DNA from: Mobula hypostoma
Taxonomy: Eukaryota
Assembly: GCF_963921235.1 (NCBI RefSeq)
Contig: NC_086104.1
Span: 4,526,001 to 4,590,000 of the forward strand
DNA length: 64,000 nucleotides
Reading direction: 5' to 3'
Position numbers and translations under genes: made by a program. Position 1 is the stretch's first letter. Each line of letters begins with the position of its first letter. A model generated the notes under the pieces. That model saw only the letters and a program-made list of their open reading frames with translations, made no database searches and was not told the origin of the DNA. Positions 7,831 through 64,000 of this stretch are shown piece after piece.

Positions 7831-7869
7831 AAGCCTCCCTGAAAGGATATTGCTCCCCCTGTAGTTCAA

Positions 7870-8587: not shown

Positions 8588-8598
8588 AAGAGGAAGTG
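8588..8598 (+). promoter_or_regulatory. PU.1/Spi-type ETS site AAGAGGAAGTG
   Basis: Matches PU.1 consensus, about 135 bp upstream of the putative leader ATG. Confidence 0.45.
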
Positions 8599-8869
8599 AT
8601 GGGGGAAAGTAGGCAGTCCTGCAGAAACTGCTGAAAAAATACCAACACACAACAGCGTAGCTGAATGTTTTCATCCACATTTAAATGTCTGTCACTGAAA
8701 CTCACTCCTTATGTCCAACACCATACACTATTACCTGTTTGGTTTCTCTTCATTTATATTACTGTATTGCTAGCTACTAATAAATATTATTAGTTAATAG
8801 CAGTACTGGACTCCAAAGTGTTTTCCATCTCTGCTGGTTCTTTATTCCCGTCACGGGGTACGTGACACC

Positions 8870-9100
8870 ATACACCATACTAATATCAGATTCAAGTGTG
8901 AGAACCAAGCCAAGTACACTGTTTCCCCACCAGACTGTAGGGCTCTTTGTGGTCAGGCTGTGAAACACTGTGGTTCCGTTGGCTGCGTATGTCCAGGGAA
9001 TGACAATCTCCAGCCCTGCCAAACGTGGCAAATTGAAGTCCGAGCCCCAAAATCCCCTTGTTTGTGTAGCCCACTGGGCTTGTCCCTCATGTTCGTCTCG
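8870..9100 (-). mobile_element. Old CR1 endonuclease remnant
   Basis: GSDFNLP...SPTVWWGNSVLGLVL resembles CR1 GDFNLP...PTRGDAVLDLVL. Confidence 0.55.
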
Positions 9101-9119
9101 GGGAATCAGCATTCGGCCC

Positions 9120-14930: not shown

Positions 14931-16485
14931 CTAACCCTGTTACAGATAAGTACCACAAAATAACAGACAGTACACCTCATAAAACATAAAGATTTAGCTT
15001 TATAATTCTCCATTTGCCTAAAGGGTTAATAAAGAAAAAGCCAAAAAAGAAAAGGGCCCATTTTAATGAAACAGTCTAATATGGAGCTCACCGTTTTCCC
15101 TTTGCCGATCTTCTTTCGATCTCCCCGGGCTTTGTCGAGTCACGGCCCCACTCCGGGTCGACTCCTACGACCTCTTCCCTCCGTTGCCTTCTCTCTTCTC
15201 CCCCAATGAAGCCTCAAGCCCAACCTTAGTGTCCCTCACCAGAGAAACCTCCCCTAAATCTGGCCATCCTCATTGGATGGGATACAATTCTCCTATCTCT
15301 TATCTTCAACAGTAACCAAGACCCCCTTACCCCGTCATCTACTTTAGGTTCCGACCCTCTGTGGGATACTGCTGGTCTATCTGGCGAGGCCTCTCCCAGT
15401 CTATCACATGTGCCCTCCTGCAACTTGGTTCCCTCTGTCCCTTGGCTGAGCCCTGCTTCATCCCCTTCACAGTCCTGCTGAAACCTAGCCTGTCAACAGA
15501 TAGTCCCTCCGATTTCATCAGACTCAGTGTGAGAAGGGTTGGGAGCCTCTTCCTCAATCTGTCAGGAGTTAGCACAATGCAGTATATACCACACCCCCAT
15601 TTCCTCATCCTTCGAGTCCGTATCCCATTCAGGGGCGAGGGGCAGTCTAGTATCTCCTGCTGTTGGTCCTTCAGTTGCTCTGTATCGCCATAGAGTCTTC
15701 TTACTAGGTGCAGGCTCCAGGTCGGGCTCTGAGTCAACTCACACCTCTTGTCCCAGAGGCAGAAGGTGGTTCCGATGGAGAATATTGACAGGACCTTTCA
15801 TATCCTCTGGTTTCACCTGGAAAGCTGGTACGTTTGACATCTGACGGTCCACTACATAGAGCGTAGCCGCCCAGCAGTCAGCCAACTTATGCTTTTCAGG
15901 TAACCCAAAATTCCTTATGAGGACTCAGTCTCCCAGCATGTTGGGAGAACCTAACCTTTTCCTCATACCTCCTCTTATTTCCTTGATTCTACTTGGCAGC
16001 AGCAACCACAGATAATTTATAAGCCTTTTTCAGCTCCTTTCTCATATCAGACAAATACCTTAGATAAGTCTACGGTGTAGGTCTTCCTCACCAGCCCCAA
16101 AACAAAGGTTGCTGGGTAACCGCGCCTCACGACCAAATATCAGGTAATATGGCAAGGTTCATTTCGGGTACAGTTGTAGCAGTGGACCAGTTGTCCAATA
16201 TGTCAACTCCACTTGTTTTTCTTGCTAGTTTCCAAGGTTCCTAGTATGTCTAGCAAGGTCTGATTAAACCTTTCAGGCTGGGATAAGGAGTAGTTCCAGA
16301 CTTCTCGACTCCAAGCATGCTCAATAGCTCATGTATGAGCCCACTCTCAAAATCCTGTCCCTGATCACTGTCGATCTTCCTGCACAGGCCATTATAAATG
16401 AAATGCTTCTTCCATAATAATGAGACAGGGAAAGCTTGCACATATCTGGTGTAGTAATCCATAATGACCAAGACATTCACCATGA

Positions 16486-17997
16486 TAATTTTTCAAAACC
16501 CGTTAGATTCTGGACTAGTTCCTGAAGATTGGAGGGTGGCTAATGTAACCCCACTTTTTAAAAAAGGAGGGAGAGAGAAACCGGGGAATTATAGACCGGT
16601 TAACCTAACGTCGGTGGTGGGGAAACGGCTAGAGTCAGTTATCAAGGATGTGATAACAGCACATTTGGAAAGCAGTGAAATGATCGGACAAAGTCAGCAT
16701 GGATTTGTGAAAGGAAAATCATGTCTGACGAATCTCATAGAATTTTTTGAGGATGTAACTAGTAGAGTGGATAGGGGAGAACCAGTGGATGTGGTATATT
16801 TGGATTTTCAAAAGGCTTTTGACAAGGTCCCACACAGGAGATTAGTATGCAAACTTAAAGCACACGGTATTGGGGGTAAGGTATTGGTGTGGGTGGAGAA
16901 TTGGTTAGCAGACAGGAAGCAAAGAGTGGGAATAAACGGGACCTTTTCAGAATGGCAGGCGGTGACTAGTGGGGTACCGCAAGGCTCAGTGCTGGGACCC
17001 CAGTTGTTTACAATATATATTAATGACTTGGATGAGGGAATTAAATGCAGCATCTCCAAGTTTGCGGATGACACGAAGCTGGGTGGCAGTGTTAGCAGTG
17101 AGGAGGATGCTAAGAGGATGCAGGGTGACTTGGATAGGTTGGGTGAGTGGGCAAATTCATGGCAGATGCAATTTAATGTGGATAAATGAGAAGTTATCCA
17201 CTTTGGTGGCAAAAATAGGAAAACAGATTATTATCTGAATGGTGGCCGATTAGGAAAAGGGGAGGTGCAACGAGACCTGGGTGTCATTATACACCAGTCA
17301 TTGAAAGTGCGCATGCAGGTACAGCAGGCGGTGAAAAAGGCGAATGGTATGCTGGCATTTATAGTGAGAGGATTCGAGTACAGGAGCAGGGAGGTACTAC
17401 TGCAGTTGTACAAGGCCTTGGTGAGACCACACCTGGAGTATTGTGTGCAGTTTTGGTCCCCTAATCTGAGGAAAGACATCTTTGCCATAGAGGGAGTACA
17501 AAGAAGGTTCACCAGATTGATTCCTGGGATGGCAGGACTTTCATATGAAGAAAGACTGGATGAATTGGGCTTGTACTCGTTGGAATTTAGAAGATTGAGG
17601 GGGGATCTGATTGAAACGTATAAGATCCTAAAGGGATTGGACAGGCTAGATGCAGGTAGATTGTTCCCGATGTTGGGGAAGTCCAGGACGAGGGGTCACA
17701 GTTTGAGGATAGAGGGGAAGCCTTTTAGGACCGAGATTAGGAAAAACTTCTTCACACAGAGAGTGGTGAATCTGTGGAATTCTCTGCCACAGGAAACTGT
17801 TGATGCCAGTTCATTGGCTATATTTAAGAAGGAGTTAGATATGGCCCTTGTGGCTACAGGGGTCAGGGGGTATGGAGGGAAGGCTGGGGCTGGTTTCTGA
17901 GTTGGATGATCAGCCATGATCATAATAAATGGCGGTGCAGGCTCGAAGGGCCGAATGGCCTACTCCTGCACCTATTTTCTATGTTTCTATGTTTCTA
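16486..17997 (+). mobile_element. Young 5'-truncated CR1 LINE
   Basis: Near-intact RT ORF (241 aa + 211 aa separated by a TGA at 17187-17189), (TTTCTATG)n tail, inserted in Gypsy integrase. Confidence 0.95.
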
Positions 17998-18159
17998 TGT
18001 TGCTGGCATCTGGCTCGATTGACAGGAAATTGATACACATCAGGTCAAGGTGCCCTGATCTCTGCAAATGGGACAACGGAGTGGCCCTCCTTGGCAACAT
18101 CTTCCTCTGTATGCATAATGCATGACCTGCAGTTCTTTTCGATCTCCGGCTTCATTCCA

Positions 18160-21100
18160 AAAGACCATAAGACACAGAAGCAGAATTAGGTCATCTGGCC
18201 CATCGAGTATGCACCACCATTCAATCATGGCTGATCCTTTTTTTCAAAATCTCCTCCTCAAACCTAGTTCTCGCCCTGCTTCCCATAATCTTTGATGTCA
18301 TGTCCTATCAAGAACCTATCAATCTTTGCTGTAAATACACACAACGACCTGGCCATCACAGATACATGTGGCAACAAAATCCACAAATTCACCACACTTT
18401 GGCTAAAGAAATTTCTCTGCATATCTGTTTTGAAAGGGTGCCCCTCGACCCTGAGGCTGTGCCCTCTCATCCTAGACTCTCCCACCATGGGAAAAATTCA
18501 TTCCACATCTACTCCAGATCTTTCAACATTTGAAAGGTTTCAATGAGATTCTCCCTCATCCTTCTGAGTTCCAGTGAGTACAGACCCAGAGATATCAATC
18601 GTTCTCTATGATAAACCTTTCATTCCTGGAATCATCCTTGTGAACTTCCTCTGAACTCTCTCCAATGCCAACACATCTTTTCTAAGATGAAGGGACCAAA
18701 ACTGTTCACAATACTCAGGGCGAGGTCTCACCAGTGCCTTATAAAGCCTCAGCATCACCTCCCTGCTCTTGTATTCTAGACCTCTGGAAATGAATCCTAA
18801 CATGGCATTTGCCTTCCTCACCACCAACTCAACCTGCAAGCTAACCTTCAGGGTGTTCTGCACAAAGACTCCCAAGTCCCTCTGCATCTTAGATTCCTGG
18901 GTTTTCTCCCCGTTTAAAAAATAGTTGGCACAATTATTTCCACTACCAAAGTTCATGACCATGCATTTTCCAACATTGTGATTCATTTGCAACTTGTTGT
19001 CCATTCTCATAATCTGTCTAAGTCCTTCTGCATCCGACCTGTTTTCTCAATACTACCTGCCCTTCTACCAATCTTTGTATCATCTGCAAACTTGGCAACA
19101 AAGGCATCTATTCCATCATCTAAATCATTTATATACAGCATAAAAAGAAGTTGTCCCAACACCGGCCCCGCAGAAAACCACTAGTCACTGGCAGCCAACC
19201 AGAAAAGGATCCTTTTATTCCCACTCGCTGCCTCCTACCAATCAGTCAATACTCTATCCATGTTAGTAACTTTCCTGTAATACTATGGGCTCTTAACTTG
19301 GTAGGCAGCTGCATGTGTGGCACATTGCCAAAGCCCTTCGTTAAGTCCAAATATACAACATCCATTGCATGCCCTTTATCTATCCCACTTGTAATCTCCT
19401 CAAAGAATTTCAACAAGTTCATCAGGCAGGATTTTCCCTGAAGAAAACCATACTGACTTTGTACTATCTTGTCCTGTGTAACCAAGTACTCCATCACCTC
19501 TTCCTTGACTCTAACATCTTCCCAACCACTGAGGTCAGGCTAACTGGTCTATAATTTCCCTTCTGCTGCTGTCCTCCTTTCTTAAAGAGTGGAGTAACAT
19601 TTGCAGTTTTCCAGTCCTCTGGCACCATGCCAGAGTCCAATGATTTTTGAAAGATCATTTCTAATGCCATCACAATTTCTCAAGCTACCTCTTCCAGAAC
19701 CCTAGGGTGCAGTTGCTCTGGGCTGGGTGACTTATATACCTTTAAGTCTTTCAGCTTTTTGAGCGTCTTCTCCCTTGTAACAGTAACTGCACCCACTTCT
19801 CTTCCTTCACACACTACAACATCAGGCATACTGCTAATGTCTTCCCCAGTGAAGGAAAAGGAAAGGTACGTCGCATCTGGTGTTTCTCCGGATAGCAGAC
19901 GATTTCCCTCCGCGCCTCTCTGACATAGTGGGGATTCGCATACGAGGCAAGTTACAGCAGTGGTTTGCCATTGCCTTCTGCCGGGTGAGTTTCCAAAGAG
20001 ATCACCAGCTCGTAACCCAGCACGGGTGGAAAGCGTGCAGGGGAGGGGAGCTGGCAGGCTGGATTCGAACCCGGGACCTTTCGTCCCGAAGTCCGATGCT
20101 AATACCACTACGCCACCGGCCGGGTCCCACAGTGAAGACTGATGCAAAATACTTATTTAATTCAGCAGCCATCTCCTTGTCCCCGTTATTATTTCTCCTG
20201 CCACATTTTCAAGCAGTTCTATATCCACTCTCGTCTCTCGTTTAAGTTTTACATACTTGAAAAAAATCTTTTACTATCCACTTTGATATTATTTGCCTGC
20301 TTGCTTTCAAATTTCATCACTTTCTTTCTCATGATTTTTGAGTTGCATTCTGTAGCTTTTAAAAAAAAACTTCCCAAACATCTATCTTCCCAATAATTTT
20401 TGCTTTGTTGTACGTCCTTTCTTTTGCTTTCACAATAGCTTTGACTTCCCTTGTCAGCCACAGTTGTACTATTTACCATTTCATTATTTCTTCATTGTTG
20501 GAATGCACATGTCCAGCACATTCCTCATTTTTCCCAGAAACGCACACCATTGCTGCTCTGCTGAGATCCCTGCCTTCAGCTCCTTCCAATTTACTTTGAC
20601 CAACTCCTCTCTTATATATCTGTAATTTTCCTTACTCCACTGAAATACTGCTGCATCAGACTACTTTCTCCCTATCAAATTTCAAGTTGAACTCAATGAT
20701 ATTGTGATCACTGGTTCCTAGGGGTTCTTTTACCTTAAGCTCCCTAAACACCTCCAGTTCATTACATAACACTTCATCCAGTATCACTGATCCCCTTGTA
20801 GGTCAACAACAAACTGCTCTAAAAAGCTATCTCTTCGGCATTCAACAAACTCATTCTCTTGAGATCCATTACCAATCTGATTTTCCCAATTGACCTGCAT
20901 ATTAAAATCTCCCATGACTAGCATAACATTGCCCATTTGACTTGCCTTCTTTATTTTCTATTGTAACCTGTGGCCCACCTCCCAGCCACTGGTTAGGTGG
21001 AGGCCTGTTGATAACTGCCATCAACATCCTTTTACTCTTGCAGTTTCTTAACTCAACCCACAAGGATTCAACATCTTCCTATCCTATGTCACACCTTTCT

Positions 21101-39052: not shown

Positions 39053-41443
39053 GATATCAGCTGTTCGGTTCAAGTTCAAGTTTAATTGTCATTCACTCAC
39101 ACACATGAAAACAGCCAAATGAAACAGTGTTCCTCTGGGGCCAAGGCGCAGGACACAGTACCAACAGCACACAGCACATATAGTCATGGTAGCAGGACAA
39201 CATACAGTCCAATATAGCCCAAGTCCCTGAGAGGCATAGCCTGTAGATTGATGGTCCTAGTCCAGCTTGTCTTCCACTGGACTGATCCTTTTTCACAACT
39301 ATGTTGGTATCAATTATCCCACTTCAGAATGCTGTGGATCTGATCTGAGACGTCTCTGATGCTGGCATCTTGGAGGCAACACACTTTTTTGATGAGTTTG
39401 CTTGAAGTGAAGGTGTAATTAATTCTGAGCAGAAGGTTGGAAGAGCTGGTTTGTGTGTGTGGAAGGAGGCAAGGAAAAATGGGATGAGTAGTGTGGACAT
39501 GTAGCATTTAGGCAGGGCATGTTCACATGGCCCTTTAGGAAGCAGGTATTGTTGTACAAAGAGGCTGGGAGATCTGTCCCAACCTGGTGTGAAAGGTTAA
39601 ACCCTGGGAATAAAAGGATCCTTTTTGGACTGGTTGCCGGTGACTAGTGATGTTCCAGAGGAGCCTGTGTTTGGACCGTTTCTTTTTATGTTGTATGTCG
39701 ATGATTTGGATGATGAAATTAGATAGCTTTGTGGCTACATTTGCAGATGATATGAAGATAGGTGGAGGGACATATAGAGTTGAGGAAGCAGGGAGACTGC
39801 AGAAGGACTGAGATACATTAGGAGAATGGGCAGAAAGGTGGCAGATGGAATATAGTGTTGGGAAGTGTATGGTCATGCACTTTGGTAGAAGAAATAAAAG
39901 CATAGACTATTTACTCAATGGGGCGAAAATTCAATATTGCAAGGTGCAAAAGAATTTGGAATTCCCTAGAGGTTAATATGTCAGTTCAGTCAATGTTGAA
40001 GAAGGTGAATGAAATGTTTGTATTCATTTCAAAAGGACTAAAATATATAAGCAAGGATGTAATGTTGAGGTTGTATAAGGCACTGGTAAGGCCTTACTTG
40101 GAGTATTGTGGGTAGTTTGGTGCCACTTATTGAAGAAGGAATAGGCTGTGTCACAAGGGGGTGTTAGGAGCGGACCCAAATGCAAGACACAGACACTGAA
40201 GTAATATAAACATGACTATGTTTATCAAGAATACTTGGGGAGCCAAGAAGCGAGGACAAAATAACAACACAAGCGAAGACGTAGAATAATAAATCGGAAA
40301 ACCTGGACTTGGACTTGGGACTTGAGCTTGACAGGGAAATGGGGTCATTACTCGGAATTCGTGTCTTGGTAGGGAGTCGATACCTGGGTTTTGTCTTGGC
40401 TCTTGACTAGAACTCGGACTTGGCTTGGCTTAGACATGGACTTGACTGAGAACTCAGGTCATGACTCGGAACTCTGGTCTTGGCAGGGACTCGGTCCCTG
40501 GGTCTTGTCTTGGCTTGACTTAGAACCCAGGCTTGACTTGACCAAGAACTCGGGTTGACTTGACCAGGAAGTCGGGCTCAAGCTCAAACTCCAACTTGAC
40601 TAGACTTGGACTCTTCTTGGGCACTCCGGGACTCTCCTTGGACACAGGACACGGAGCCGGGATCCTTCTTGGACACAGGGCCGGGGGCTTTCTTGGTATG
40701 AGTTTCTGATGCCGAGCTTCTTGATGTGGGTTTCGGGTGCTGAGCTTCTTGGTATGGGTTCTGACAGAGATTCTAACGGGGATGGTCCTGCAAAGGAATA
40801 GCTGTACCCCTGAGCTATTTATGTTGCAAGCACGAAATGAGGATCAGCTACCTCAATCAAGATGCCCAACGGAACAAGGGGAAAAAGGCATAACCGGAAT
40901 ACGGAATCCATGGACCAGACAGTTCACCAGAATGTGGACTTCACGGATCGGACCGTGACGGTACTCCCATCCGCCTCTATGGGAATCTCCTGTTGATCTA
41001 ACAGGCTTGCCCAGATTATCAACGATCCGGGCGGATGGGGGGGGGGGTGGGTTTCAACAAGAGGGAACACTGGATGGCTGGAGTTTAACAACAGTGTCTT
41101 TGTCGCTGGGTCCATGTTTGACTGGGCCATTCTGTCACAAGGGGGCATTGGGAGTGGAATCAAATACAAGACACAGACACTGAAGTAATATGAACATGAC
41201 TATGTTTATTAAGAATACTAGGGGAGCCAAGGAGCGAGGACAAAATAACAACACGGGCGTAGAAGTGGAATAATAATTTGGGAAACCTGGACTTGGACTT
41301 GGGACTTGAGCTGGACAGGGAACTCGGGTCATGACTCGGAACTCGGGTCTTGGCAAGGACTAGGTACCTGCGTCTTGTCTACTTGACTTGGTAGAAAAAG
41401 TCATTTTTTTTCTTAAACACTGCTCGGGGAGAAGGGTCTGCAC

Positions 41444-41480: not shown

Positions 41481-43746
41481 AGCAGACCACCAGATACAGC
41501 GGCCATCGTCGGAGTGGACTGAGTCAGAGTGGGACAACTTTGGCTGAACAGGCTTCGGCGAGAACAGGCAGAGGCCAGGGTAGGTTCTGGTAAGTTTTTT
41601 TTTATTCCGATTGTCTAGCGTAGAGAGAATGCCAGGCAGGATGTTGGAATGCTCCTCTTGCAGGATGTGGGAAGTCAGGGAGCCCTCCGGTATCCCTGAC
41701 AACGACACCTGCAAGGAGTGCATCCAGCTGCAGCTCCTAACAAACCGCGTTAGGGAACTGGAGCAGGAGCTAGATGACCTGCGGATCATTCGGGAGAATG
41801 AGGAGATTATAGATAGTAGCTGCAGGGAGGTAGTTATGCCAAAGGAGCAGAGGACAGGAAATTGGGTCACTGTCAGGCGAGGGAAGAGGAAAGGGCAGGC
41901 AGAGCAGGGTTCCCCTGTGGCCATTCCTCTCAACAACAAGTATACCGCATTGGATACTGTTGGGGGGGGATGACTTACCTGGGACAAGCTGCAGTAGCCG
42001 GATCTCTGGCACTGAGTCTGGCTCTGCAGTGCAGAAGGGAGGGGGGAAAAGAGGAGAGTGGTAGTGATAGGGGACTCAATAGTTAGAGGTACAGATAGGA
42101 GGTTCTGTGGTCGTGACAGAGAATCCAGGATGGTTTGTTGCCTCTCGGGTGCCAGGGTCAAGGATGTCTCTGATCGATTGCATGACATTCTGAAGTGGGA
42201 GGGTGACCAGCCAGATGTCGTGGTGCACATCGGTACCAATGACATAGCAAGGAAGAGTGAGGAGGTCCTGGACAGTGAGTATAGAGAGCTTGGTAGGAAG
42301 TTGAAAAGCAGGACCTCAAGGGTGGTAATCTCAGGATTGCTACCTGTGCTACGTGCCGGTGAGGGGAGGAATAGGATGCTCTGGAGGATGAACAAGTGGC
42401 TGAGGAGCTGGTGTAGGGAGCAGGGTTTCAGATTTCAGGATCATTGGGACCTCTTCTGGGGCAGGTGGGACCTGTACAAGAGAGACGGGTTACACTTGAA
42501 CTACAGGGGGATCAATATCCTTTCAGGGAGGTTTGTTAATGCTTTATGGGAGGCTTCAAACTAGATTTGCAGGGGGATGGGAAGCAGAGTGACAGAGCTG
42601 ACAGTGTGGCTGGGGTGAAAATAAATGATGTTAAAAGTTCAAGCAAATCCGCTAATAGAAAGGTTGTGAGTGGTGGGCAAAATCTTCTGAGGTGTATATA
42701 TTTCAATGCTAGGAGTACTGCGGGGAAGACGGATGAGTTGAGGGTGTGGATTGACACATGGAATTATGACGTTATAGCAATTAGTGAAACTTGGCTACAG
42801 GAGGGGCAGGACTGGTAGCTTAATATTCCAGGGTTCCAATGTTTCAGATGTGATCAAGGCAGAGGACTGAAAGGTGGGGGAGTAGCATTGCTTGTTAGGG
42901 AAAATATTACAGCAGTGCTCAGGCAGGACAGATTAGAGGGCTTGTCTACTGAGTCCTTATGGGTGGAGCTGAGAAACAGGAAAGGTATGGCCACATTAGT
43001 GGGATTGTATTACAGACCATCCAATAGTCAACGAGAATTGGAAGAGCAAATCAGCAGAGAGATAGCAGGCAACTGCAGGAAACATAAAGTTATGGGGGGT
43101 AGGGGATTTTAATTTTCCATATATTGATTGGGTCTCCCATACTGTTAGGGGTCTAGATGGTTTAGAGTTTGTAAAATGTGTTCAGGAAAGTTTTCTAAAT
43201 CAATATATAGAGGGGCCAACTAGAGGGGATGCACTATTGGATCTCCTGTTAGGAAACGAGTTAGGACAAGTTGCAGAAGTCTGTGCAGGGGAGCACTTTG
43301 ATTCCAGTGATCATAACACCATTAGTTTCAACTAGATCATGGACAAGGATAGTTCTGGTCCTAGGGTTGAGGTTCTTAACTGGAAGAAGGCCAAATTTGA
43401 AGAAATGAGAAAGGATCTAAAAAGCGTGGATTGGGACAGGTTGTTCTCTGGCAAAGATGTGATTGGTACGTGGGAAGCCTTCAAAGGAGAAATTTTGAGA
43501 GTGCAGAATTTATTTGTTCCTGTCAGGATTAAAGGCAAAGTGAATAGGAATAAGGAACCTTAGTTCTCAAGGGATATTGCAACTCTGATAAAGAAGAAGA
43601 GGGAGTTGTATGACATGTATAGGAAACAGGGAGTAAATAAGGTGCTTGAGGAGTATAAGAAGTGCAAGAAAATACTTAAGAAAGAAATCAGGAGGGCTAA
43701 AAGAAGACATGAGGTTGCTTTGACTGTCAAAGTAAAGGATAATCCA

Positions 43747-44553
43747 TAGAACCATAGAAACTACAGCACAGAAACAGGCCCTTTGGCCCTTCTTGGCTGG
43801 GCCGAACCATTTTCTGCCTAGTCCCACTGACCTGCACACGGACCATATCCCTCCATACACCTCCCATCCATGTATCTGTCCAATTTATTCTTAAATGTTA
43901 AAAAAGAACCCGCATTTACCACCTCGTCTGGCAGTTCATTCCATACTCCCACCAGTCTCTGTGTGAAGAAGCCCTCCCTAATGTTCCCTTTAAACTTTTC
44001 CCCCCTCACCCTTAACCCACGTCCTCTGGTTTTTTTCTCTCCTTGCCTCAGTGGAAAAAGCCTGCTTGCATTCACTCTATCTATACCCATCATAATTTTA
44101 TATACCTCTATCAAATCTCCCCTCAGTCTTCTATGCTCCAGGGAATAAAGTCCTAACCTATTCAACCTTTCTCTGTAACTGAGTTTCTCAAGTCCCGGCA
44201 ACATCCTTGTAAACCTTCTCTGCACTCTTTCAACCTTATTTATATCCTTCTGTAATTTGGTGACCAAAACTGAACACAATACTCCAGATTCGGCCTCACC
44301 AATGCCTTATACAATCTCATCATAACATTCCAACTCCTCATGTCTTCTCTTAGCCCTCCTGATTTCTTTCTTAAGTATTTTCTTGCACTTCTTATACTGC
44401 TCAAGCACCTTATTTACTCCCTGCTTCTTATACATGTCATACAACTCCCTCTTCTTCTTTATCAGAGTTGCAATATCCCTTGAGAACCAAGGTTCCTTAT
44501 TCCTATTTACTTTGCCTTTAATCCTGACAGGAACAAACAAATTCTGCACTCTC
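43747..44553 (-). mobile_element. Inverted chimeric CR1 insert within CR1
   Basis: AATCCA duplication (43741-43746, 44554-44559); CR1 3' end (43747-44335) fused to inverted copy of about 43497-43712. Confidence 0.85.
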
Positions 44554-46619
44554 AATCCAAAGAGAGTTTACAGGTATATTAAGAGCAAAAGGATTGTAAG
44601 GGATAAAATTGGTCTTCTTGAAGATCAGAGAGGTCGGCTATGTGAGGAAACAAAGGAAATGGGGGAGATCTTAAATAGGTTTTTTGCGTCTGTATTTACT
44701 AAGGAAACTGGCATGAAGACTATGGAATTAAGGGAAGCAAGTAGTGAGATCATGGAAACTGTACAGATCGAAAAGGAGGAGGTCCTTGCTGTCTTGAGGA
44801 AAATTAAAGTAGATAAATCCCCAGGACCTGACAGGGTGTTCCCTCGGACCTTGAAGGAGACCAGTGTTGAAATTGCAGGGGCCCTGGCAGAAATATTTAA
44901 AATGTCGCTGTCTACAGCTGAGGTGCCAGAGGATTGGAGAGTGGCTCATGTTGTTCTGTTGTTTAAAAAAGGATCGAAAAGTAATCCGGGAAATTATAGG
45001 CCAGTAAGTTTAACGTCAGTAGTAGGTAAGTTATTGGAGGGAGTACTAAGAGACAGAATCTACAAGCATTTGGATAGACAGGGACTTACTAGGAAGAGTC
45101 AACATGGCTTTGTGCGTGGTAGGTCATGTTTGACCAATCTATTGGAGTTTTTCGAGGAGGTTACCAGGAAAGTGGATGAAGGGAAGGCAGTGGATATAGT
45201 CTAAATGGACTTCAGTAAGGCCTTTGACAAGGTTCCGCATGGGAGGTTAGTTAGGAAAATTCAGTCGCTAGGTATACGTGGAGAGGTGGTAAATTGGATT
45301 AGACATTGGCTCAATGGAAGAAGCCAAAGAGTGGTAGTAGAGAATTGCTTCTCTGAGTGGAGGCCTGTGACTAGTGGTGTGCCACAGGGATCAGTGCTGG
45401 GTCCATTGTTATTTGTCATCTATATCAATGATCTGGATGATAATGTGGTAAATTGGATCAGCAAATTTGCTGATGATATAAAGATTGGAGGTGTAGTAGA
45501 CAGCAAGGAAGCTTTTCAGAGCCTGCAGAGGGACTTGGACCAACTGGGAAAATGGGCTAAAAAATGGCAGATGGAGTTTAATACAGACAAGTATGAGGTA
45601 TTGCATGTTGGAAGGACAAACCAAGGTAGAACATACAGGGTTAATGGTAAGGCACTGAAAAGTGCAGTGGAACAGAGGGATCTGGGAATACAGATAGAAA
45701 ATTCCCTAAAAGTAGCATCACAGGTAGATAGGGTCGTAAAGAGAGCTTTTGGTACATTGGCCTTTATTAATCAAAGTATTGAGTATGAGAGCTGGAATGT
45801 TATGATGAGGTTGTATAAGGCATTGGTGAGGCCGAATCTGGAGTATTGTGTTCAGTTATGGTCACCAAATTACAGGAAGGATATAAATAAGGTTGAAAGA
45901 GTGCAGAGAAGGTTTACAAGGATGCTGCCGGGACTTGAGAAACTCAGTTACAGAGAAAGGTTGAATAGGTTAGGATTTTATTCCCTAGAGTGTAGAAGAA
46001 TGAGGGGAGATTTAATAGAGGTATATAAAATTATGATGGGTATTAATACAGTGAATGCAAGCAGGCTTTTTCCACGGAGGCAAGGGGAGAAAAAAACCAG
46101 AGGACATGGGTTAAGGGTGAGGGGGGAAAAGTTTAAAGTGAACATTAAGGGGGGCTTCTTCACACAGAGAGTGGTGGGAGTATGGAATGAGCTGCCAGAC
46201 GAGGTGGTAAATGTGGGTTCTTTTTTAACATTTAAGAATAAATTGGACAGATACATGGATGGGAGGTGTATGGAAGGATATGGTCCATGTGCAGGTCAGT
46301 GGGACTAGGCAGAAAATAGTTCAGCACAGTCAAGAAGGGCCAAAAGGCCTGTTTCTGTGCTGTAGTTTCTATGGTTCTATGGTTCTATGGCTTAGCTTGG
46401 ATGCGGACTTGACTGAGAAATCAAGACATGACTCGGAACTCAGATCTTGGCAGGGACTCGGTCCCTGGGTCTTGTGTTGGCTTGACTTAGAACTCGGGCT
46501 TGGCTTGACCAGGAACTCAGACTTGACTTGACTTGACCAGGAAGCTGGGCTCAAACTCAGACTCCGACTTGACTAGACTTGGACTCTTCTTGGACGCAGA
46601 ACCGGGACTTGACCCACAG

Positions 46620-46860
46620 GACACAGAGCCGGGACTCTCCTTGGACACGGGACACAGAGCCGGGACTCTCCTTGGACACAGGACACAGAGCCGGGACTCT
46701 CCTTGGACACGGGACACAGAACTGAGACTCTTCTTGGACACAGGACACAGAGCCGGGACTCTCCTTGGACACGGGACACAGAACTGAGACTCTTCTTGGA
46801 CACAGGACACAGAGCCGGGACTCTCCTTGGACACGGGACACAGAGCCGGGACTCTACTTG
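46620..46860. repeat. 31 bp minisatellite inside LTR (about 8 copies)
   Basis: GGACACAGAGCCGGGACTCTCCTTGGACAC(A/G) units. Confidence 0.9.
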
Positions 46861-47028
46861 GACACAGGGCCGGGACCCTTCTTGGACACAGGGCTGGGAC
46901 CCTTCTTGGACACAGGGCCAGGACCCTTCCTGGACACAGGGCCAGGACCCTTCCTGGACACAGGGCCGGGACCCTTCTTGGACATAGGGCCGGGACCCTT
47001 CTTGGACACAGGGCCGGGACCCTTCTTG
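46861..47028. repeat. 24 bp minisatellite inside LTR (7 copies)
   Basis: GACACAGGGCCGGGACCCTTCTTG units. Confidence 0.9.
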
Positions 47029-50000
47029 GTATGAGTTTCTGATGCCGAGCTTCTTGATGTGGGTTTCGGGTGCTGAGCTTCTTGGTATGGGTTCTGACAG
47101 AGATTCTAACGGGGATGGTCCAGCAAAGGAATAGCTGTACCCCTGAGCTATTTATGTTGCAAGCACGAAATGAGGATCAGCTACCTCAATCAAGATGCCC
47201 AACGGAACAAGGGGAAAAAGGCATAACCGGAATATCCATGGACCAGACAGTGAACCAGAATGCGGACTTCACGGATTGGACCGAGACGGTACTCCCATCC
47301 GCCTCTATGGGAGTCTCCTGTTGATCCAACAGACTTGCCCAGACTATCAACGATCCAGGTGGGTAGAAGGGTGGGTTTCAACAAGAGGGAACACTGGATG
47401 GCTGGAGTTTAACAACAGTGTCTTTGTCGCTGGGTCCATGTTTGACTGGGCCATTCTGTCACAAGGGGGACATTGGGAGTGGAATCAAATACAAGACACA
47501 GACACTGAGGTAATATGAACATGACTATGTTTATTAAGAATACTAGGGGAGCCAAGGAGTGAGGACAAAATAACAACGTGGGCGTAGACGTGGAATAATA
47601 AATCGGAAAACCTGGACTTGGACTTGGGACTTGAGCTTGACTGGGAACTCGTGTCATGACTTGGAACTCGGGTCTTGGCAGGGACTTGGTACCTGGGTCT
47701 TGTCTTGGTTCTTGACTAGAACTCGGATTTGGCTTAGCTTGGACGTAGACTTGACTGAGAAATCAAGACATGACTCGGAACTCGGGTCTAGGCAGGGACT
47801 CGGTCCCTGGGTCTTGTCTTGGCTTGACTTAGAACTCAAGCTTGGCTTGACCAGGAACTCTGGTTGACTTGACCAAGAACTCGGGCTCAAGCTCAGACTC
47901 CGACCTGACTAGACTTGGACCCTTCTTGGACACAGGGCCGGGACCCTTCTTGGTATGAGTTTCTGATGCCGAGCTTCTTGATGTGGGTTTCGGGTTCTTG
48001 GTATGAGTTCTGGCAGAGATTCTAATGGGGATGGTCCAGCAAAGGAATAGCTGTACCCCTGTGCTATTTATGTTGCAAGCCCGAAATGAGGATCAGCTAC
48101 CTCAATCAAGATGCCCAATGGAACAAGGGGAAAAAAGAATAACCGGAATACAGAATCCACGGACCGGACCGTGGCAGTCTGAGGTTAGAGAGGGTTCTGA
48201 AATGGTTCCAGACAATTATTCTTGGGATAAAAGGATTATCATCTCAGCTATAATTGAAGACTTTTCACCCAGCGTTTAGAAGAATGAGGGTGGATATCTC
48301 TGTAACCTATCAAATGTTGAAATATCTATATAGACTGGATGTGAAGTGAATGTTTCCTTTGGTGGGAGAGTCTAGGACAAGGGGGCAGAGCTTCAAACTA
48401 GAGGAACGTCCATTTAGAGCAGATATGAGGAGGAATTTCTTTAGTCATAGTGTGGTGAATATAAGGAATTAATTGCCACGGACGGCTGTGGAATTCAAGT
48501 CATTAGGAGTATTTAAGACAGAGGTTGATAGGTTCTTGATTAGTCAGGTCATGAAGGGATAAGACAGGAGAATTTTTTTGATTAGATTATGAGGACACTC
48601 AGTCCTCGTTTATTGTCACTTAGAAATGCATGCATTAAAAAATTATACGACATTCCTCCAGAATGATATCACAGGAAAAACACAGGACAAACCAAGACTA
48701 AAACTGACAAAACCACATAATTATAACACATAGTTACAACAGTGCAAAGCAATACCATAATTTGATAAAGAGCAGACCATGGGCACAGTAAAAAAAAAGT
48801 CTCAAAGTCTTGATAGCCTCATCATCTCACGCAGCCCCCAGAAGGGAGAAACTCTCCCTGCCATGAACCTCCAAGTGCCACAAACTTGCTGATGCAGCAC
48901 CATTGGAAGCACCCGATCGTACCAGACTCTGAGACCATCCGAAAACTCCGAGCCTCTGATGAGCCCCTCCGACACAGCCTCTCTGAGCACCATCCTCTGC
49001 CGAGCGCTTCGACCCCACCCCAGCCGCTGAGCAACAAGCAAAACCGAGGACTCGGGGCCTTCCCCTCAGAGATTCTGGACCACACAGTAGCAGCAGCAGC
49101 GGAACAGGCATTTCAGAAGTTTCACCAGATGTTCCTCTGTGCTCTCACATCCGTCTCCATCGAATCAGGATTGTGCACAGCACCCTGCTTGACAAATAAC
49201 AGACATCACAATCGGAGTGGCCGCTGCGAGCTGTGTCGCGCCGCCATCTTCTCCTCCCCCCTGAGAAGGAAATGGATCAGCCATGATGAAATGGTGAACA
49301 GACTTGATTGGATAAATGGACAATTTTTGCTCCTGTGTATTACAGTCTTTGGTTAGTACACAGGAAAGAATGCAGAAGTGATTATCAAAGACATTTATGG
49401 ACTCATGCAGAGGGCTTGAGTTACAAACAGAATCAGGATACACTGGGGTATTTATTGCTGGAGTGAAAGAGTCTGATGTGACCGGAGACATGTCTAAGAT
49501 CATGGGGGAGCTAGACAAATTTTACCGTTTGCGCAATTTGTTCTTTTCTCACACATTAAGTATTTAATGTTTTCTTGAACGGATTCCATGTTGTTTCGTT
49601 GTTCAGTGACTGCCTGTGGGAAGATGAATCTCAGAGTTGTATTCTGTGTACACATGTTAATAATAAATGTACTTTAAATCTTTAATATGGTGGGTGGTCA
49701 GAGTCCTTTTCTCAGGGAAGGGGAATCTAAAGGAAATGGTGTAGGTTTAAGATGGCGGGGGGGAGACTGAACAGGGCCCAGAGGGACATGTTTTCCACAG
49801 GGAGGATGGTGTGTATATGGATCGAGCTGTCAGAGGAAGTGGTAGAGGGGGTACAATTACAACATTTAAAATATATGACAAAAAGAATGTGGACAGTCAA
49901 CTTTTGAGGGATTATGGACCCAACACAGGGAAATAGGACCAGGCCAGAGAAACATCTTGGTCAGCAGGGACATGTTGGGCAGAACAGCCCATTTCCGTGA

Positions 50001-50193: not shown

Positions 50194-50562
50194 GTGTAAA
50201 TGCAGGGACAGTCCTGATCCAATCGCCAGGAGTTGTGAAGGTGCGTGAAGCTGGAACGGTGCAGATACAGTGTGTCCCGGAGATGAGCAATATGAATATC
50301 ATGGTGATCAATTTGTATATACACTGGTGCAACTGATGTCATAAACCAACAGATAAAGGAATAGGAATAGTCCTTAGTCTTTATAGTAATGACCAAGTTT
50401 ACAGAACATGGGGCTTCTCCAATCGATTTTAGCTATCCAGGAATGTCACCACTAACAGCTACTCACTGACCATCAGCAACGTGAAGCTCACCGACTCTAA
50501 ACTTTACATCTGTGGCATTTGGGGGTCAGTCTTTGGAAAGGGAACCCAGCTGAATGTGACCA
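50194..50562 (+). pseudogene. Germline-joined V-J immunoglobulin-domain exon, pseudogene
   Basis: CAG acceptor (50191-50193); (G)VNAGTVLIQSPGVVKVREAGTVQIQC..IHW..GFSNRF*LSRN..YSLTISNV..DSKLYICGIWGSVFGKGTQLNVT; donor GTGAGT at 50563; in-frame stops at 50334-50336 and 50430-50432. Confidence 0.88.
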
Positions 50563-51999: not shown

Positions 52000-52930
52000 C
52001 CTTGCGTGTTACACGCTTGGACGATCATGGCTTTCCACTTCGAATGATCCCACGCAGCGTCAATGATATCTCGCACACTTAGATCTGTTAGTTCTTTCAC
52101 AGTGTCCATATATTTTCTTCTTTGCCTTCCTCTTCCGCATTTCCCAGGAATACGGTCTTGTAATGTAAGGCATTCTATTTCTCCCTTTCTGATGTCAAAG
52201 CCCAGGAACTTAAGTTTCCTCTCATTTCATGTTCTCATTAAAGATCTTTTTGTATGGGCACGTTGCAGTACTGTCTCATTAGTTACCCTATCTTTATATG
52301 ATATTTTCAGCATTCTTCTAAGAAACCACATTTCTGTTGCTTCTAAGTTTTTTTGGAGTTCTGGTATTATAGTTCATGTTTCGGAAGCATACAGCAAGAT
52401 TGACCAGATGTAACATTTTAGTAGCCTAAGCCTTGTTGTCATAGAAATGTGTCTGTTGGTAAGAATGGGTTTCATTTTTTGGAAGTTGGTTTTGGCATTG
52501 GCAATTCTTTTTACTTCGACTTTACTTCTGGCATCTTGTGACATAAAGCTACCAAGGTAATTAAAGCTGGTCTTTTGTTCAATCTTTTGGTTACCGATGT
52601 ACAATTGGCAGCTGGGAGTATCCTGCTCTTTTGATATTACCATACACTTGGTTTTTTTGCAGTTGATGGTAAGACCAAAATTTGCATTTGTTGTACTACT
52701 TTGTCTAGGAGGATTTGTAGATCTTCTGCAGCACTTGCTATTAGGATGGTATCGTCTGCATATCTTATATTGTTGATGTTAACACCTCCAATTTTTATCC
52801 CATCTAGGTCTTCTATTTCTCTGAGAATCATTTCACTATAGATAATGAATAATTCTGGTGAGGCCACGCATTCCTGTCTAACTCCTCTTTGAATTTTAGT
52901 CCAACTGCTTATATTATCGTCAATTTTTAC
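52000..52930 (-). mobile_element. RTE-clade LINE fragment
   Basis: RGVRQECVASPELF, NNIRYADDTILIA, FNYLGS, LLKCYIWSILLYASET. Confidence 0.85.
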
Positions 52931-53520
52931 CCGCCTCCGTTTAGTTCCAATAAAAATTTCCATCCCCACAACATCACTGGCCTTACGAATGAGTTTGCTG
53001 ATTTTGTTGGTGTCTGCTACCCTCAGCCTGCTGCCCCAGTGCACAACAGCAAACATGATCGCACTGGCCACCACAGACTCGTAGAACATCCTCAGCATCG
53101 TCTGGCAGATGTTAAAGGACTTCAGTCTCCTCAGGAAATAGAGAAGGCTCTGATCCTTCTTCTAGACAGCCTCAGTGTTCTTTGACCAGTCCAGTTTACT
53201 GTCAATTCATATCCCCAGGTATTTGTAATCCTCCACCATGTCCACACTGACCCCCTGGATGGAAACAAGGGTCGCTAGTACCTTAGCTCTCCTCAGGTCT
53301 ACCACCAGCTCCTTAGTCTTTTTCACATTAAGCTGCAGATAATTCTGCTCACACCATGTGACAAAGTTTCCTACCATATCCCTGTACTCAACCTCATCTC
53401 CCTTGCTGATGCATTCAACTATGGCAGAGTCATCAGAAAACTTCTGAAGATGACAAGACTCTATGCAGTAGTTGAAGTCTGAGGTGTAAGTGATGAAGAG
53501 AAAGGGAGACAAGACACTCG
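52930..53520 (-). mobile_element. Rex1/Babar LINE fragment
   Basis: YTSDFNY...LQKFSDDSAIV...LNVKKTKELVVD; MLRMFYESVVASAI. Confidence 0.85.
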
Positions 53521-54200
53521 CTACCTCCTACCAATCAACCAATGTTCTAATCAGGCCAGTAACTTTCCTGTAATACCATGGGCTCTTAACTTAGTAAGCA
53601 GCCTCATGTGTGGCACCTTGTCAAAGGCCTTCTGAAAGTCCAAATATACAATATTCACTGCATCCCCTTTATCTCCCCTATTTGTAATCTCCAAAAAGAA
53701 TTTCAACAGGTTTGTCAAGCAAATTTTCCCTTCAGGAAACCATGCAGACTTTGTCTTATCATCTCCCATGGTCACCAAATACTCCATAAGTTCATCCTTA
53801 ACAATTGATTCCAACACCTTCCCAACCACTGAGGTCAAGCTAATTGGTCTATAATTTCCCTATTGCTGCCTTCCTCCTTTCTTTAAGAGTGGAGTGACAT
53901 TTGTAATTTTCCAGTCCTTTAGCACCATGCCAAGTCCAATGATGTTTGAAAGATCATTACTACTGCCTCCAAAATCTCTACTGCTACCTCTTTTGAAACC
54001 CTAGGCGCAGTTGAGCTGGTCTGGGTGACTTATGTACCATTAGGTCTTGCAGCTTTTTGAGCACCTTCTACCTTGTAACAGTATCTGCACTCACATCTCT
54101 TCCCACAAACCCTTCAACATCTGGCACACAGCTAGTGTCTTACACAGAGAAGACTGATGCAAAATACTCATTTAGTTCAGCTGCCATCTCCTTGGCAACC
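53520..54200 (-). mobile_element. CR1 RT fragment
   Basis: TSVVGKVLESIVK...VYLDFQKAFDKVPH. Confidence 0.85.
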
Positions 54201-59204: not shown

Positions 59205-59255
59205 CTACGTACCTTGGAGATGACTGTAGATGGACTGAGTGGGACGTTGCAGAGC
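59205..59255 (-). CDS. Receptor terminal exon ALQRPTQSIYSHLQGT* (second half of ITAM)
   Basis: Acceptor TGTGTTCTCTACTAG, phase 0, 17 codons ending TAG at 59207-59205. Confidence 0.75.
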   Translation of the reverse strand, partial: ALQRPTQSIYSHLQGT

Positions 59256-59345
59256 CTAGTAGAGAACACAGAAATGGTGTGAACAACAGCTTGACAGCTC
59301 ATGCTGTGGGAAAAGCTTCAATGTTCCAAAGGTGACCTTCCTTAC

Positions 59346-59387
59346 CATGTAGGTGTTGTTTGAATCGAGCTGGTGACCTCCTGAACC
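59346..59387 (-). CDS. Receptor cytoplasmic exon GSGGHQLDSNNTYM (first Tyr of ITAM)
   Basis: Acceptor TGTTCTGTTGTAG, donor GTAAGG, 42 nt, phase 0/0. Confidence 0.75.
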
Positions 59388-59959
59388 CTACAACAGAACA
59401 GAATTGAACCGTTACATCGGTCTAAACATTGTCAACACTGGCTTTAAGTTGAGAGCGGGACAGTTTAAGGGAGATGTGTGGGGCAATTTATCTTCACACA
59501 GTGGGTGGTGGGTGTCTGGGACACACTGCCAGGGTGGTGCTGGAAACAAACACAACAGTAGCATTTAAGAGGCATTTAGACAGACACAGGAACATGGAGG
59601 GAAATGGATGAAAGTTCAAAGGAAAATTTATTTTCAGAGTACATCCATGTCTCCACATACAACCCTGAGATTCTTTTTCCTGCGGGCATACTCAGCAAAT
59701 CTATAGAACAGTAACTGTAAACTGGATCAATGAAAGAAAAAAAGCATAGAAGATTTCAAACTGTGCAAATGCAAATTTAAATAAATAGCAATAAATAACG
59801 AGAATGTGAAATAACAAGATAAAGAGTTCTTAAAGTCAGATAATTTTTGATGGGAATATTGGTTGTGGGATCATTTGCAGGGAGATGGGATTATTTTGAT
59901 AAAGACAAAATATTCTGTAGATGCTGGAATTCAGAGCAAAACACACAAAATTCTGGAGG

Positions 59960-60230
59960 ATCTCAGCAGGTCAGGCAGCATCTTTGGAAAGGAAGAAGAT
60001 GACACCTGCCCATTCACCTCCTTCCTCAGCTCCATTCAGGGCCCCAAACTATCCTTTCAGTTGAGGCAACACTTCACCTTCAAATCTGTTGGGACTCCCA
60101 ATGGGGCCTCCTCAATACTGGTGAGATCCAGTGCAGATTGGGTGACTGCTTTCACGAGCACCTCCGTTCCATTCACAATAAGCAGCATTTCAGATGGCTA
60201 ACCATTTTAATTCCAATCCCATTCCCATTG
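59960..60230 (+). mobile_element. Penelope-like GIY-YIG remnant
   Basis: LNTGEIQCRLGDCFHEHLRS resembles the Penelope endonuclease YIGET.R.L..R..EH motif. Confidence 0.65.
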
Positions 60231-60679
60231 AAACACGTTCAATGGCTCAATTTAATATCAGAGATTGTATACAGTATACAACCTGAAATTCTTACTCTTT
60301 GCAGATATCCACAAAACAGGAAAAACCCAAAGAGTGAGTGACAGAAATGTTAGAACCCCCAAAGCCCCCTCCCCCTCCCACTCACAAGCATCAAAATCAT
60401 CGACCCTCCCTCCTCCCCCACCCAACTTGTTCCAGCAAAAGCTCTGACCCAACTACCCACCATGCAAGCAAAAGCAAACCCCCCAAAGAGACCATGATCT
60501 AGACTGCATCAAAAAACTATTGTCCAACCCAACACTTCATCATTTCAGACAGGTTTTCTCTCAGTAGCAAGGTAGGGAAGAATATTGATCATGTAGCAAC
60601 CAAAAGGGGGAGATCAGCAGCTCACTCTTTGGATGTTACAGTCTGCCGCGTCACATCTCCAAGCCCCTCGACTCGAGGA

Positions 60680-60845
60680 CCGACAGACACACGAGAGAGA
60701 CATGGACAGGGGAAAGGGAGAGATGGGGAAGTGAGAGGGAGGAAAGGGGGAGAAGTGGAAGGGAAGAAGGGGAGGGGAAGGGGAGAGAGGAAGGGGGGAT
60801 GGCGAGAGGGAGGGGGAGGAGAGGGAGATGAAGAGGCAGAGAGAT
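60680..60845 (+). repeat. Purine-rich (G/A) low-complexity tract
   Basis: Almost entirely G and A for about 165 bp; inside the predicted 61940-59388 intron. Confidence 0.85.
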
Positions 60846-61339
60846 TGTTTAAGTGCAGGGGTCCTCTTCCAAAAGCTGCACGCACCACCTGCTGTCTCAA
60901 TATTTCTTTCAGCCTCCTGCAAAACTCCAGTCAACAACTACAGCAAGAAATAAGTTTGCCTATGAAAGTGCACATCTTCTAGTCCACGCATGGTTGGTCA
61001 TGGGATGAAGGGATACGGGGAGCAGGCAGGAAATTGGGGCTGAGAGGAAAGTTGGATCAGCCATGATGAAATAGTGGAGCAGATTCTATGAGCCAAATGG
61101 TCTAATTCCGCTCCAGTATTTTATGGTCTTGTATCAAAATGTCAGGCAAAATGGCGAGTCCAAGAACAAGAACCCACCACATGTGGAGAATTGTAGCTTG
61201 AGCTGCAACTGTAAATCATGGACTCCAACAGGTCCGTCGCCTGCTTTATGACAAAAATGAGGCCATTCTCACATTGGAAGCCTCATATGGACAGCCTGCA
61301 ATCTGATGCCATGAACATCAATTTCTATAACTTCAGGTA

Positions 61340-61670
61340 TTTTCAACACACTCCTCCATTTTCCTCAACTGCCTATCACTTCCCCATGTTGCCCCCTTCC
61401 ATGCTTTTGTCCAATAGTCTACTCTCCTCTCCCATCAGATTCTTCCTTCTTCAGCCTTTTAGCTTTCCCACCTATCACCTCCCAGCTTCTTACTTCATCC
61501 ACCCCACCTTCCACCTATCACCTTCTAGCTTGAAGTCCTACCCATCACCCCACAGCTTCTCATTCTGCCTTCTGTGTCCATCTTTTCAAGGCCTGATGAA
61601 GGGTTTTGGTCTGAAGCTCCATTCATTCCATAGATGCTGCCTGACCTGTGGAGTTTCTCCAGCAGTTTGT
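61340..61670 (+). mobile_element. Penelope-like remnant
   Basis: Same pyrimidine-rich body and GATGCTGCCTGACCTG end as 37500-37880. Confidence 0.6.
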
Positions 61671-61940
61671 CTGTGTCGCTGGGGATTAGTTTCATGCAGC
61701 ATCCTGGTTGGCACAGCCATGATGGGCAGAAGGGCCTTTTCCTGTGCTGTACAGCTGTACGGTCTGTGGTCAATATCCAGGAACAGTTACACCACATACA
61801 TTTGCAAATCATTCAGACATTGCAGAAATATTCGATGAACCACAATGTCACTGGGGAATATCCCTGATGTAAGAAGCCAAAAACATACCAGAGCGATCCC
61901 CACACAATTCTACTCATCTGAGAAAAGCATCAGAACTCAC

Positions 61941-62014
61941 CGGGACATCCCTGGCCACGGAAACATTTTCATAATCTGCCCCTGAGCTCCGGTGATCAGT
62001 TTCTGTTGGTGGGT
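61941..62014 (-). CDS. Receptor cytoplasmic exon (H)PPTETDHRSSGADYENVSVARDVP
   Basis: Acceptor TCTATTTCACAG, donor GTGAGT, 74 nt, phase 1/0; YENV motif. Confidence 0.8.
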
Positions 62015-62180
62015 CTGTGAAATAGAGTATAAATTATCAGTAACACCCGTCTCTGAGCCATGAGTCCCACATTGTTGTCACAACACAACGACGGGCTCTT
62101 TCACAATCAGTCCCCGACCTTCACATTTTAATAACCCCACACAACAATCAGATCAGAATGAACCATTTAGTCACACGTAC

Positions 62181-62300
62181 GGGATGGGTGGTTTCTAAAC
62201 GCTCTGCGTCTGATGAGGAAAATGCCTCCAGTGACAGTGAGAACTCCCAGCACGACAGCCAGAATGAGCCAGGCCAGGTACGATGGGGCTCGGGACATCT
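62181..62300 (-). CDS. Receptor transmembrane exon (K)MSRAPSYLAWLILAVVLGVLTVTGGIFLIRRRAFRNHPS
   Basis: Acceptor TTTCCGTTCCTCAAACAG, donor GTACGT, 120 nt, phase 1/1; hydrophobic run of about 22 aa followed by RRR stop-transfer. Confidence 0.85.
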
Positions 62301-63671: not shown

Positions 63672-64000
63672 CTTTAAACCGAGCTTGAGGGGTGGTTGGA
63701 TGGAGTTGCTGTGTGGATAACAGTGCTACTGAGACACAGAGGTGGTGAGATCAAGCCTTGTCTGCAGAATTCCTCTGAAAACCGAGGGTAGGAGCCAAAT
63801 CTCCACTGTGCCCCCTTGTCAAAGCTGGCAAGGTCTCGCAGCACTTCTGAAAGCCACTGGCAGTCAGGAGTTGTTGAAAATGATTAACATTCAAAACACA
63901 ACTCAACAAAGCTGAAAACATTTCTAAAATTATAGAAGTGCTTAAAGTTAGAACATCACTTAAAACTTAGAAGTTGTGTGCAGTTTTGGTCTCCAAATTT

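Follow-up and report, generated by a model that had tools for sequence, protein, structure and literature searches.

A putative YxN-plus-ITAM receptor tail in Mobula hypostoma and the elasmobranch family of antibody-like VJ receptors that probably carries it

Introduction

When two short open frames on one DNA strand can be joined into a perfect ITAM, the tyrosine-based activation motif of immunoreceptors, it must be asked whether the join belongs to a real gene, what kind of receptor that gene would encode and how this receptor would signal. We addressed this question for a locus of the ray Mobula hypostoma that lies within 64,000 nucleotides of contig NC_086104.1 (forward-strand positions 4,526,001 to 4,590,000; NCBI RefSeq assembly GCF_963921235.1), a stretch here called the window and numbered from its first letter. 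A preliminary description of positions 59205 to 62300 had proposed a split-exon ITAM, an upstream YENV motif and an uncharged transmembrane (TM) segment. Our analysis indicates that the TM segment and the signalling tail encoded by these exons probably belong to a type I receptor, one of a multigene family of elasmobranchs. In this family, the ectodomain likely consists of one or two non-rearranging, antibody-like VJ domains, and the tail of YEN(V/I), some 20-24 further residues and a classical ITAM. As an activating cassette, the tail is of a kind already known, and it is for the host family that we found no published description.

Results

A five-exon gene model with a split ITAM

On the minus strand, five exons bounded by GT-AG introns (VJ, TM and the cytoplasmic exons A, B and C) form a single open frame, as judged from their translations and from the spliced product. 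They are listed here with the intron between exons A and B, a caret marking each splice boundary.

63670-63331, minus strand: membrane-proximal, germline-joined VJ (V-set) domain exon, ending in phase 1 at the donor acc a^gtgagt
62300-62181, minus strand: TM exon, phase 1 to 1, with the stalk K-MSRAPS, the TM segment YLAWLILAVVLGVLTVTGGIFLI (62280-62212) and the stop-transfer sequence RRRAFRNHPS
62014-61941, minus strand: cytoplasmic exon A, (H)PPTETDHRSSGADYENVSVARDVP, ending in phase 0, with DYENV at 61976-61962 and the YENV codons at 61973-61962
59388-61940, minus strand: phase-0 intron of 2.55 kb between exons A and B
59387-59346, minus strand: cytoplasmic exon B, GSGGHQLDSNNTYM, phase 0 to 0, the first ITAM half, ending in YM, with its Tyr codon at 59351-59349
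59255-59213, minus strand: cytoplasmic exon C, ALQRPTQSIYSHLQ plus 1 nucleotide, the second ITAM half, with its Tyr codon at 59228-59226 and donor gt at 59212-59211

The spliced product reads ...TQLIVT-K-MSRAPS-YLAWLILAVVLGVLTVTGGIFLI-RRRAFRNHPSHPPTETDHRSSGADYENVSVARDVPGSGGHQLDSNNTYM^ALQRPTQSIYSHLQ. Acceptors of the four tail exons (TM, A, B and C) are pyrimidine-rich and end in ...ag^, and the donors of the gene are gtgagt, gtacgt or gtaagg in every case. Exons B and C contribute 14 codons each. At their junction, exon B ends with ...tac atg^gtaagg and exon C starts with ctag^gct ctg, which places a phase-0 intron between YM and AL, inside the first YxxL. Both the join of 59346-59387 to exon C, yielding the ITAM peptide, and the interruption of the first YxxL by an intron had been put forward in the preliminary description, and both are borne out by the spliced frame and the consensus splice sites. 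The span given there for exon C, 59205-59255, requires trimming: the exon is real, but 59205-59212 is intron and the exon ends at 59213. Read-through of exon C gives QGT and then a stop.

Motifs of the predicted tail

The ITAM of this copy, N-N-T-YMAL-QRPTQSI-YSHL, is an exact YxxL-x7-YxxL with N at position -3. Classical ITAMs follow the consensus D/E/N-xx-YxxL/I-x7-YxxL/I, and an exon boundary always splits their first tyrosine module (PMC4536121). This consensus, D/E/N-x-x-Y-x-x-L/I-x(7)-Y-x-x-L/I in full, is matched by the present copy and by 15/15 aligned tails, and the B/C junction provides the exon boundary within the first tyrosine module.

Upstream of the ITAM, exon A contains the DYENV that had been reported there. 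Its Y-E-N is invariant in the 15 aligned tails and matches the pY-x-N motif from which binding by the Grb2 SH2 domain is predicted; in CD22, phospho-YENV binds Grb2 (PMC6286995). The earlier proposal of a Grb2 or SHP2-type site at YENV therefore survives in its first half, with a conserved YxN motif that equals the CD22 Grb2 tetrapeptide, and is unsupported in its second. An immunoreceptor tyrosine-based inhibition motif (ITIM) for SHP-1/2 needs S/I/V/L at -2 and I/V/L at +3, and the window reads A-D-Y-E-N-V, with A at -2 here and in most relatives. The only aligned tail to fit the ITIM consensus at the YENV tyrosine is that of M. birostris (V-D-Y-E-N-V).

The TM segment, previously said to be without Lys, Arg and Asp, indeed has no K, R, D or E in YLAWLILAVVLGVLTVTGGIFLI. 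Two receptor classes were considered and rejected. A signalling subunit whose acidic TM residue pairs with the basic TM segment of a ligand-binding chain (CD3/FcR-gamma/DAP12 type) does not fit a TM segment that has no charged residue in this copy or in its relatives, and an adaptor-dependent activating receptor with a basic TM residue and a short, motif-free tail (KIR-S, NKp30 or activating NITR type) does not fit a TM segment without K/R followed by a 63-residue tail with three conserved tyrosines. A Pfam scan of six tails gave no match above noise to the ITAM model or to any family. An ESM Atlas feature search of the tail returned only leads below 0.9 (TREML1, LST1, SCIMP, SIT and CD79b-like TM adaptors), which were not used as evidence.

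Conservation among rays and sharks

Relatives were found by a V-domain search and then by tail searches from two of its hits; all are NCBI automatic gene models. They come from the rays Hemitrygon akajei, Hypanus sabinus, M. hypostoma and M. birostris and from the sharks Heterodontus francisci, Heptranchias perlo, Pristiophorus japonicus and Chiloscyllium punctatum. In all eight species the relatives have the same exon joins, exemplified by ...DYENVSVARGV(L/P)^GSGGHQVDSNNTYM^ALQRPTQSIYGHLQ^ADNKPPSTS in rays and by ...DYENISSIRDTERSGDHPADSTYMALQRRDQSIYSELKGNKQTADS in the horn shark. Transcripts in other frames, or skipping these exons, had been named as findings that would count against the gene model; the predicted mRNAs of other species keep the same frames and junctions. 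The 59388-61940 intron, suggested as a place to look for additional coding exons, revealed none when checked against the models of relatives, which join ...ARGVP^GSGGHQ directly and, like this copy, splice exon B to exon C as ...TYM^ALQ. The TM-exon peptide is the same in relatives P0005-P0014. A Hemitrygon read-through isoform (P0001) has an equivalent in the window that meets a stop.

Conservation of the tail was assessed at the protein level, by column, in an alignment of 13 family tails from rays and sharks. The 12 invariant columns, out of 66 cytoplasmic ones, cover each of the seven motif residues (Y, E, N; Y, L; Y, L), an enrichment with a hypergeometric P of ~1e-6, uncorrected for phylogeny. 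The ray-to-shark comparison of tyrosines that the preliminary description had called for is thus favorable to it, the three Tyr, the Asn of YxN and both Leu being invariant in the 13 family sequences, all of which also have a spacer of exactly 7, N or D at -3 and an uncharged TM segment. Over the cytoplasmic part, this copy shares no more than 37-49% identity with the sharks; over V, TM and tail together, it is 86-88% identical to ray relatives.

Ectodomain and host family

The V exon matches Pfam V-set with E=3.5e-13, and among PDB sequences it is closest to antibody V domains. With DIVLIQSPS..., WYRKLPGQ, DSAVYYC and a terminal DGNRTQLIVT, it is, judged by its sequence, a V domain of antigen-receptor type to which a J-like end is fused. 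No immunoglobulin exon was found in the 1 kb between the V exon and the TM exon, and relatives read IVT-K-MSRAPS across this boundary. Full-length relatives have two VJ domains in tandem, followed by the TM segment and tail. Their NCBI names are 'uncharacterized protein' and, for the bamboo shark, 'immunoglobulin kappa light chain-like'. The order of V domains varies among paralogues, a D2-type V following the leader in P0007 and P0011, which suggests either exon shuffling within the cluster or chimeric models. Gene models at the related loci P0013 and P0010 extend over 18.6 kb in Hemitrygon and 69 kb in M. birostris.

Two proteins, Hemitrygon P0002 and Hypanus P0004, possess a V domain 88-89% identical to the membrane-proximal V of this copy. 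They have a different TM segment and tails containing TVYANV, MFYAD(V/I) and TEYAV(I/V), which resemble ITIMs and immunoreceptor tyrosine-based switch motifs (ITSMs). Because these partners share the V domain and bear ITSM/ITIM-like tails, the genes appear to form a paired activating/inhibitory family. An inhibitory-type TM segment and tail gave no tblastn match in the window. In the literature searched, outside of which lie many subscription journals, no description was found of an elasmobranch or non-rearranging VJ receptor family with ITAMs or ITIMs.

Predicted signalling

We propose that ligand binding would lead to receptor clustering, upon which a Src-family kinase would phosphorylate the two ITAM tyrosines and so recruit the tandem SH2 domains of Syk/ZAP-70, while phospho-YENV would dock Grb2. 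No adaptor of the CD3-zeta/FcR-gamma/DAP12 type should be required, because the ITAM lies on the receptor itself and the TM segment is without charge. The partners with ITSM/ITIM-like tails would oppose the signal, as happens in paired receptor families elsewhere. We infer adaptor independence and docking from these features, and the interpretation offered in the preliminary description, adaptor-independent activation together with Grb2 docking, is supported at the level of sequence.

Discussion

State of this copy

Several observations weigh against taking this copy for an intact and self-sufficient activating receptor. A search of the minus strand over the 59 kb downstream failed to locate the last coding exon of the ray relatives (ADNKPPS(T/R)S-stop), whether by a peptide regular expression, by sliding match to four C-termini of relatives or by a degenerate DNA pattern allowing <=3 mismatches; a 6-of-9 match at 49459 was rejected, having no acceptor. 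The only canonical acceptor of the V exon, AG at 63673-63672, gives an exon start in phase 2, one base out, and an in-frame taa at 63676-63674, directly upstream of the exon, blocks earlier starts. VJ exons of the family otherwise run from phase 1 to phase 1: the two in the window both have a phase-1 end, and the plus-strand D1-type exon described below starts cacag^GT in phase 1. The offset would frameshift a D1-to-D2 splice; it may represent a deletion, a slip of assembly or the sign of a pseudogene. None of the retrieved annotated proteins is >88% identical to this copy. Finally, the TM segment is strongly conserved in the pattern L.W.IL...G....GGI, which could reflect dimerisation or a membrane partner.

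It is thus quite possible that the family cassette is real and that this locus is nonetheless a pseudogene or gene fragment, its tail exons remaining intact through recent duplication. The missing terminal exon, present in all ray relatives, the phase of the V-exon acceptor and the ceiling on identity are all in keeping with decay, as are a J-like G-x-G motif that reads G-N-R here and G-N-G in most relatives, and a paralogous VJ pseudo-exon with two stops 9 kb away. On the other hand, all five exons are open and have consensus splice sites, read-through of exon C adds only G-T and a stop and leaves the ITAM whole, and the C-terminal nonapeptide is not conserved in sharks. In addition, the exons further upstream are outside the window and could have a matching phase, and the one-base offset could be an assembly slip.

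Three features of the neighborhood concern the same family or gene. A convergent D1-type VJ exon on the plus strand (50194-50562; cacag^GT...FGKGTQLNVT a^gtgagt) contains the in-frame stops HWCN* and NRF*, is 49% identical to an Amblyraja D1 domain and has neither a TM nor a tail exon close by; in appearance it is a pseudo-exon of this VJ family. On the minus strand, a short open reading frame (ORF) at 63880-63921, with ATG at 63921, encodes MFSALLSCVLNVN and loosely resembles the leader MFAAIITTLTLSVCAVG of relatives, although no GT donor is in phase with it; possibly, the intron preceding the V exon retains a degenerate leader exon here. Minus-strand sequence below 59213 is repeat-like.

Alternative roles for the tail tyrosines

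A second alternative accepts the tail but assigns its tyrosines mainly to functions other than Syk recruitment, either as YxxL signals for endocytosis or sorting, in an endocytic receptor like CEACAM3, or as an inhibitory ITIM or inhibitory ITAM (ITAMi) acting through S-I-Y-x-x-L. The distal ITAM half, SIYSHL (59217-59234), also matches the ITIM consensus S-x-Y-x-x-L, or more generally S/I/V/L-x-Y-x-x-I/V/L, a further point against a purely activating tail, and the Ile at -1 of the distal Tyr, which the ITAM consensus does not require, is invariant in the 13 family sequences. Furthermore, homologous tails occur in CEACAM-like receptors, and this family includes ITAM-like members that are endocytic (PMC5112662 and, by its title, PMC13278318). 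We nevertheless consider these functions unlikely to predominate. The conserved 7-residue spacer, N or D at -3 and division of the first YxxL by a phase-0 intron together define a classical ITAM (PMC4536121), and the existence of separate partners with ITSM/ITIM-like tails would make an inhibitory role redundant here.

An arbitrary exon join that produced the ITAM by chance, already thought unlikely in the preliminary description, is so improbable as to be negligible and is refuted by conservation: the choice of junction was free when the join was first made and a six-frame translation of the window (122,369 residues) contains 6 matches to a relaxed ITAM regular expression, but none of these is exact, shuffling of the 63 tail residues produced the relaxed form in 6.6e-4 and the exact x7 L/L form in 9.5e-5 of trials (a chance of ~1e-4 for the latter), and the junction and motif recur in gene models of eight species.

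Surrounding sequence

The receptor gene is located in a repeat-rich stretch of vertebrate DNA with many retroelement ORFs and no N runs. LINE-type reverse-transcriptase/endonuclease ORFs are numerous at 1-19000, 42800-46300 and 52400-53900, and an LTR-retroelement pol is represented by integrase (about 10500-11200), reverse transcriptase (about 11750-13800) and protease/gag-like sequence (14000-15000). Tandem Pro/Arg-rich repeat ORFs (RRVPALCP..., GPGPVSKK...), open in several frames on both strands, occupy 40400-40760, 46520-47180 and 47570-48090 and are probably minisatellite arrays.

Significance

For mammals, birds, frogs and bony fish, there are good descriptions of paired activating/inhibitory families of the immunoglobulin superfamily. 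In the literature searched, we found no description of such a paired family in sharks or rays, and a VJ family whose activating members bear their own ITAM would fill this gap. The broader proposal that elasmobranchs possess a large, clustered and undescribed family of non-rearranging receptors with tandem light-chain-like VJ domains, self-signalling through a YxN-plus-ITAM cassette shared with CEACAM-like genes, is offered tentatively and may well not hold. If true, the family would be a cartilaginous-fish counterpart of the NITRs, which a 2019 review still treated as unreported from cartilaginous fish, and it would provide a living case in which a V region of antigen-receptor type is coupled directly to an ITAM, with no CD3/CD79 involved, with a bearing on how the first antigen receptors signalled. 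The value of the locus lies in the host family rather than in the tail motif, the tail being an ordinary CEACAM-type YxN-plus-ITAM cassette, and this copy is possibly not the best representative of the family.

Comparison with known systems

The signalling subunits CD3, CD79a/b, FcR-gamma, DAP12 and TCR-zeta share the ITAM consensus and the exon boundary in the first tyrosine module with the ray gene (PMC4536121). They differ from it in that their TM segment contains an acidic residue and their ligand-binding ectodomain is minimal or absent, whereas the ray TM segment is uncharged and the ITAM is placed on the putative ligand-binding chain. The YENV of CD22 (Y4) is identical as a tetrapeptide to the ray site, although CD22 is an inhibitory Siglec and the context therefore differs (PMC6286995).

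Among V-domain receptors, teleost NILTs and a few NITRs bear their own ITAM (PMC3022915). Like the ray family, NILTs and NITRs are clustered, have one or two V-type domains and carry ITIMs or, in some members, an ITAM, and NITR domains contain J-like motifs, as does the ray VJ (PMC3022915). They are known solely from bony fish, however, and the NILT V domain has extra cysteines of the CX3C type that are not seen in the ray V. NITRs, which combine V with I (V/C2) domains, resemble the ray family in architecture, as judged from published descriptions. The elasmobranch UrIg and UrIg2 genes resemble the ray gene in their non-rearranging, unsplit VJ exon of antigen-receptor appearance (PMC12227049). 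UrIg proteins are built of one VJ domain and then several C1 domains, with no mention of an ITAM (PMC12227049); the ray VJ exon splices straight to the TM exon. Identity with UrIg/UrIg2 is ruled out by this architecture, there being no C1 domain exon between V and TM.

The closest parallel to the tail is found in CEACAMs. When a profile of the TM segment and tail was searched against 1.84 billion representative proteins, it matched the VJ family itself and two other proteins: a horn-shark 'pregnancy-specific glycoprotein 22-like' protein of CEACAM type (P0019; tail AYENF...NSTYMDLKLEDQSIYHDL, BLASTP E 3e-9) and a CEACAM-like protein of a skink, a lizard (P0020; tail TTYENV...NDVYETLQHPDQSLYQQL, BLASTP E 2e-7). 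The ray tail is homologous to these CEACAM-like tails, which have the same YEN-ITAM layout. Activating ITAM-CEACAMs of Xenopus combine a phase-0-split ITAM with YxNx Grb2 motifs (PMC5112662). Indeed, tails of Xenopus group 1/2 Ceacams and of mammalian CEACAM3, like that of the ray gene, have their own ITAM with a phase-0 split in the first YxxL, an upstream YxNx Grb2-type site and paired partners of the ITIM/ITSM type (PMC5112662). The CEACAM ectodomain differs, being composed of an N domain and IgC2 domains in place of the antigen-receptor-like VJ domains of the ray protein. Membership of the ray gene in the CEACAM family was rejected, since its ectodomain is a VJ whose best PDB matches are antibody V domains and the tail alone aligns to CEACAM-like proteins. 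The sharing of this tail between VJ receptors and CEACAM-like genes would be due either to exon shuffling or to common descent.

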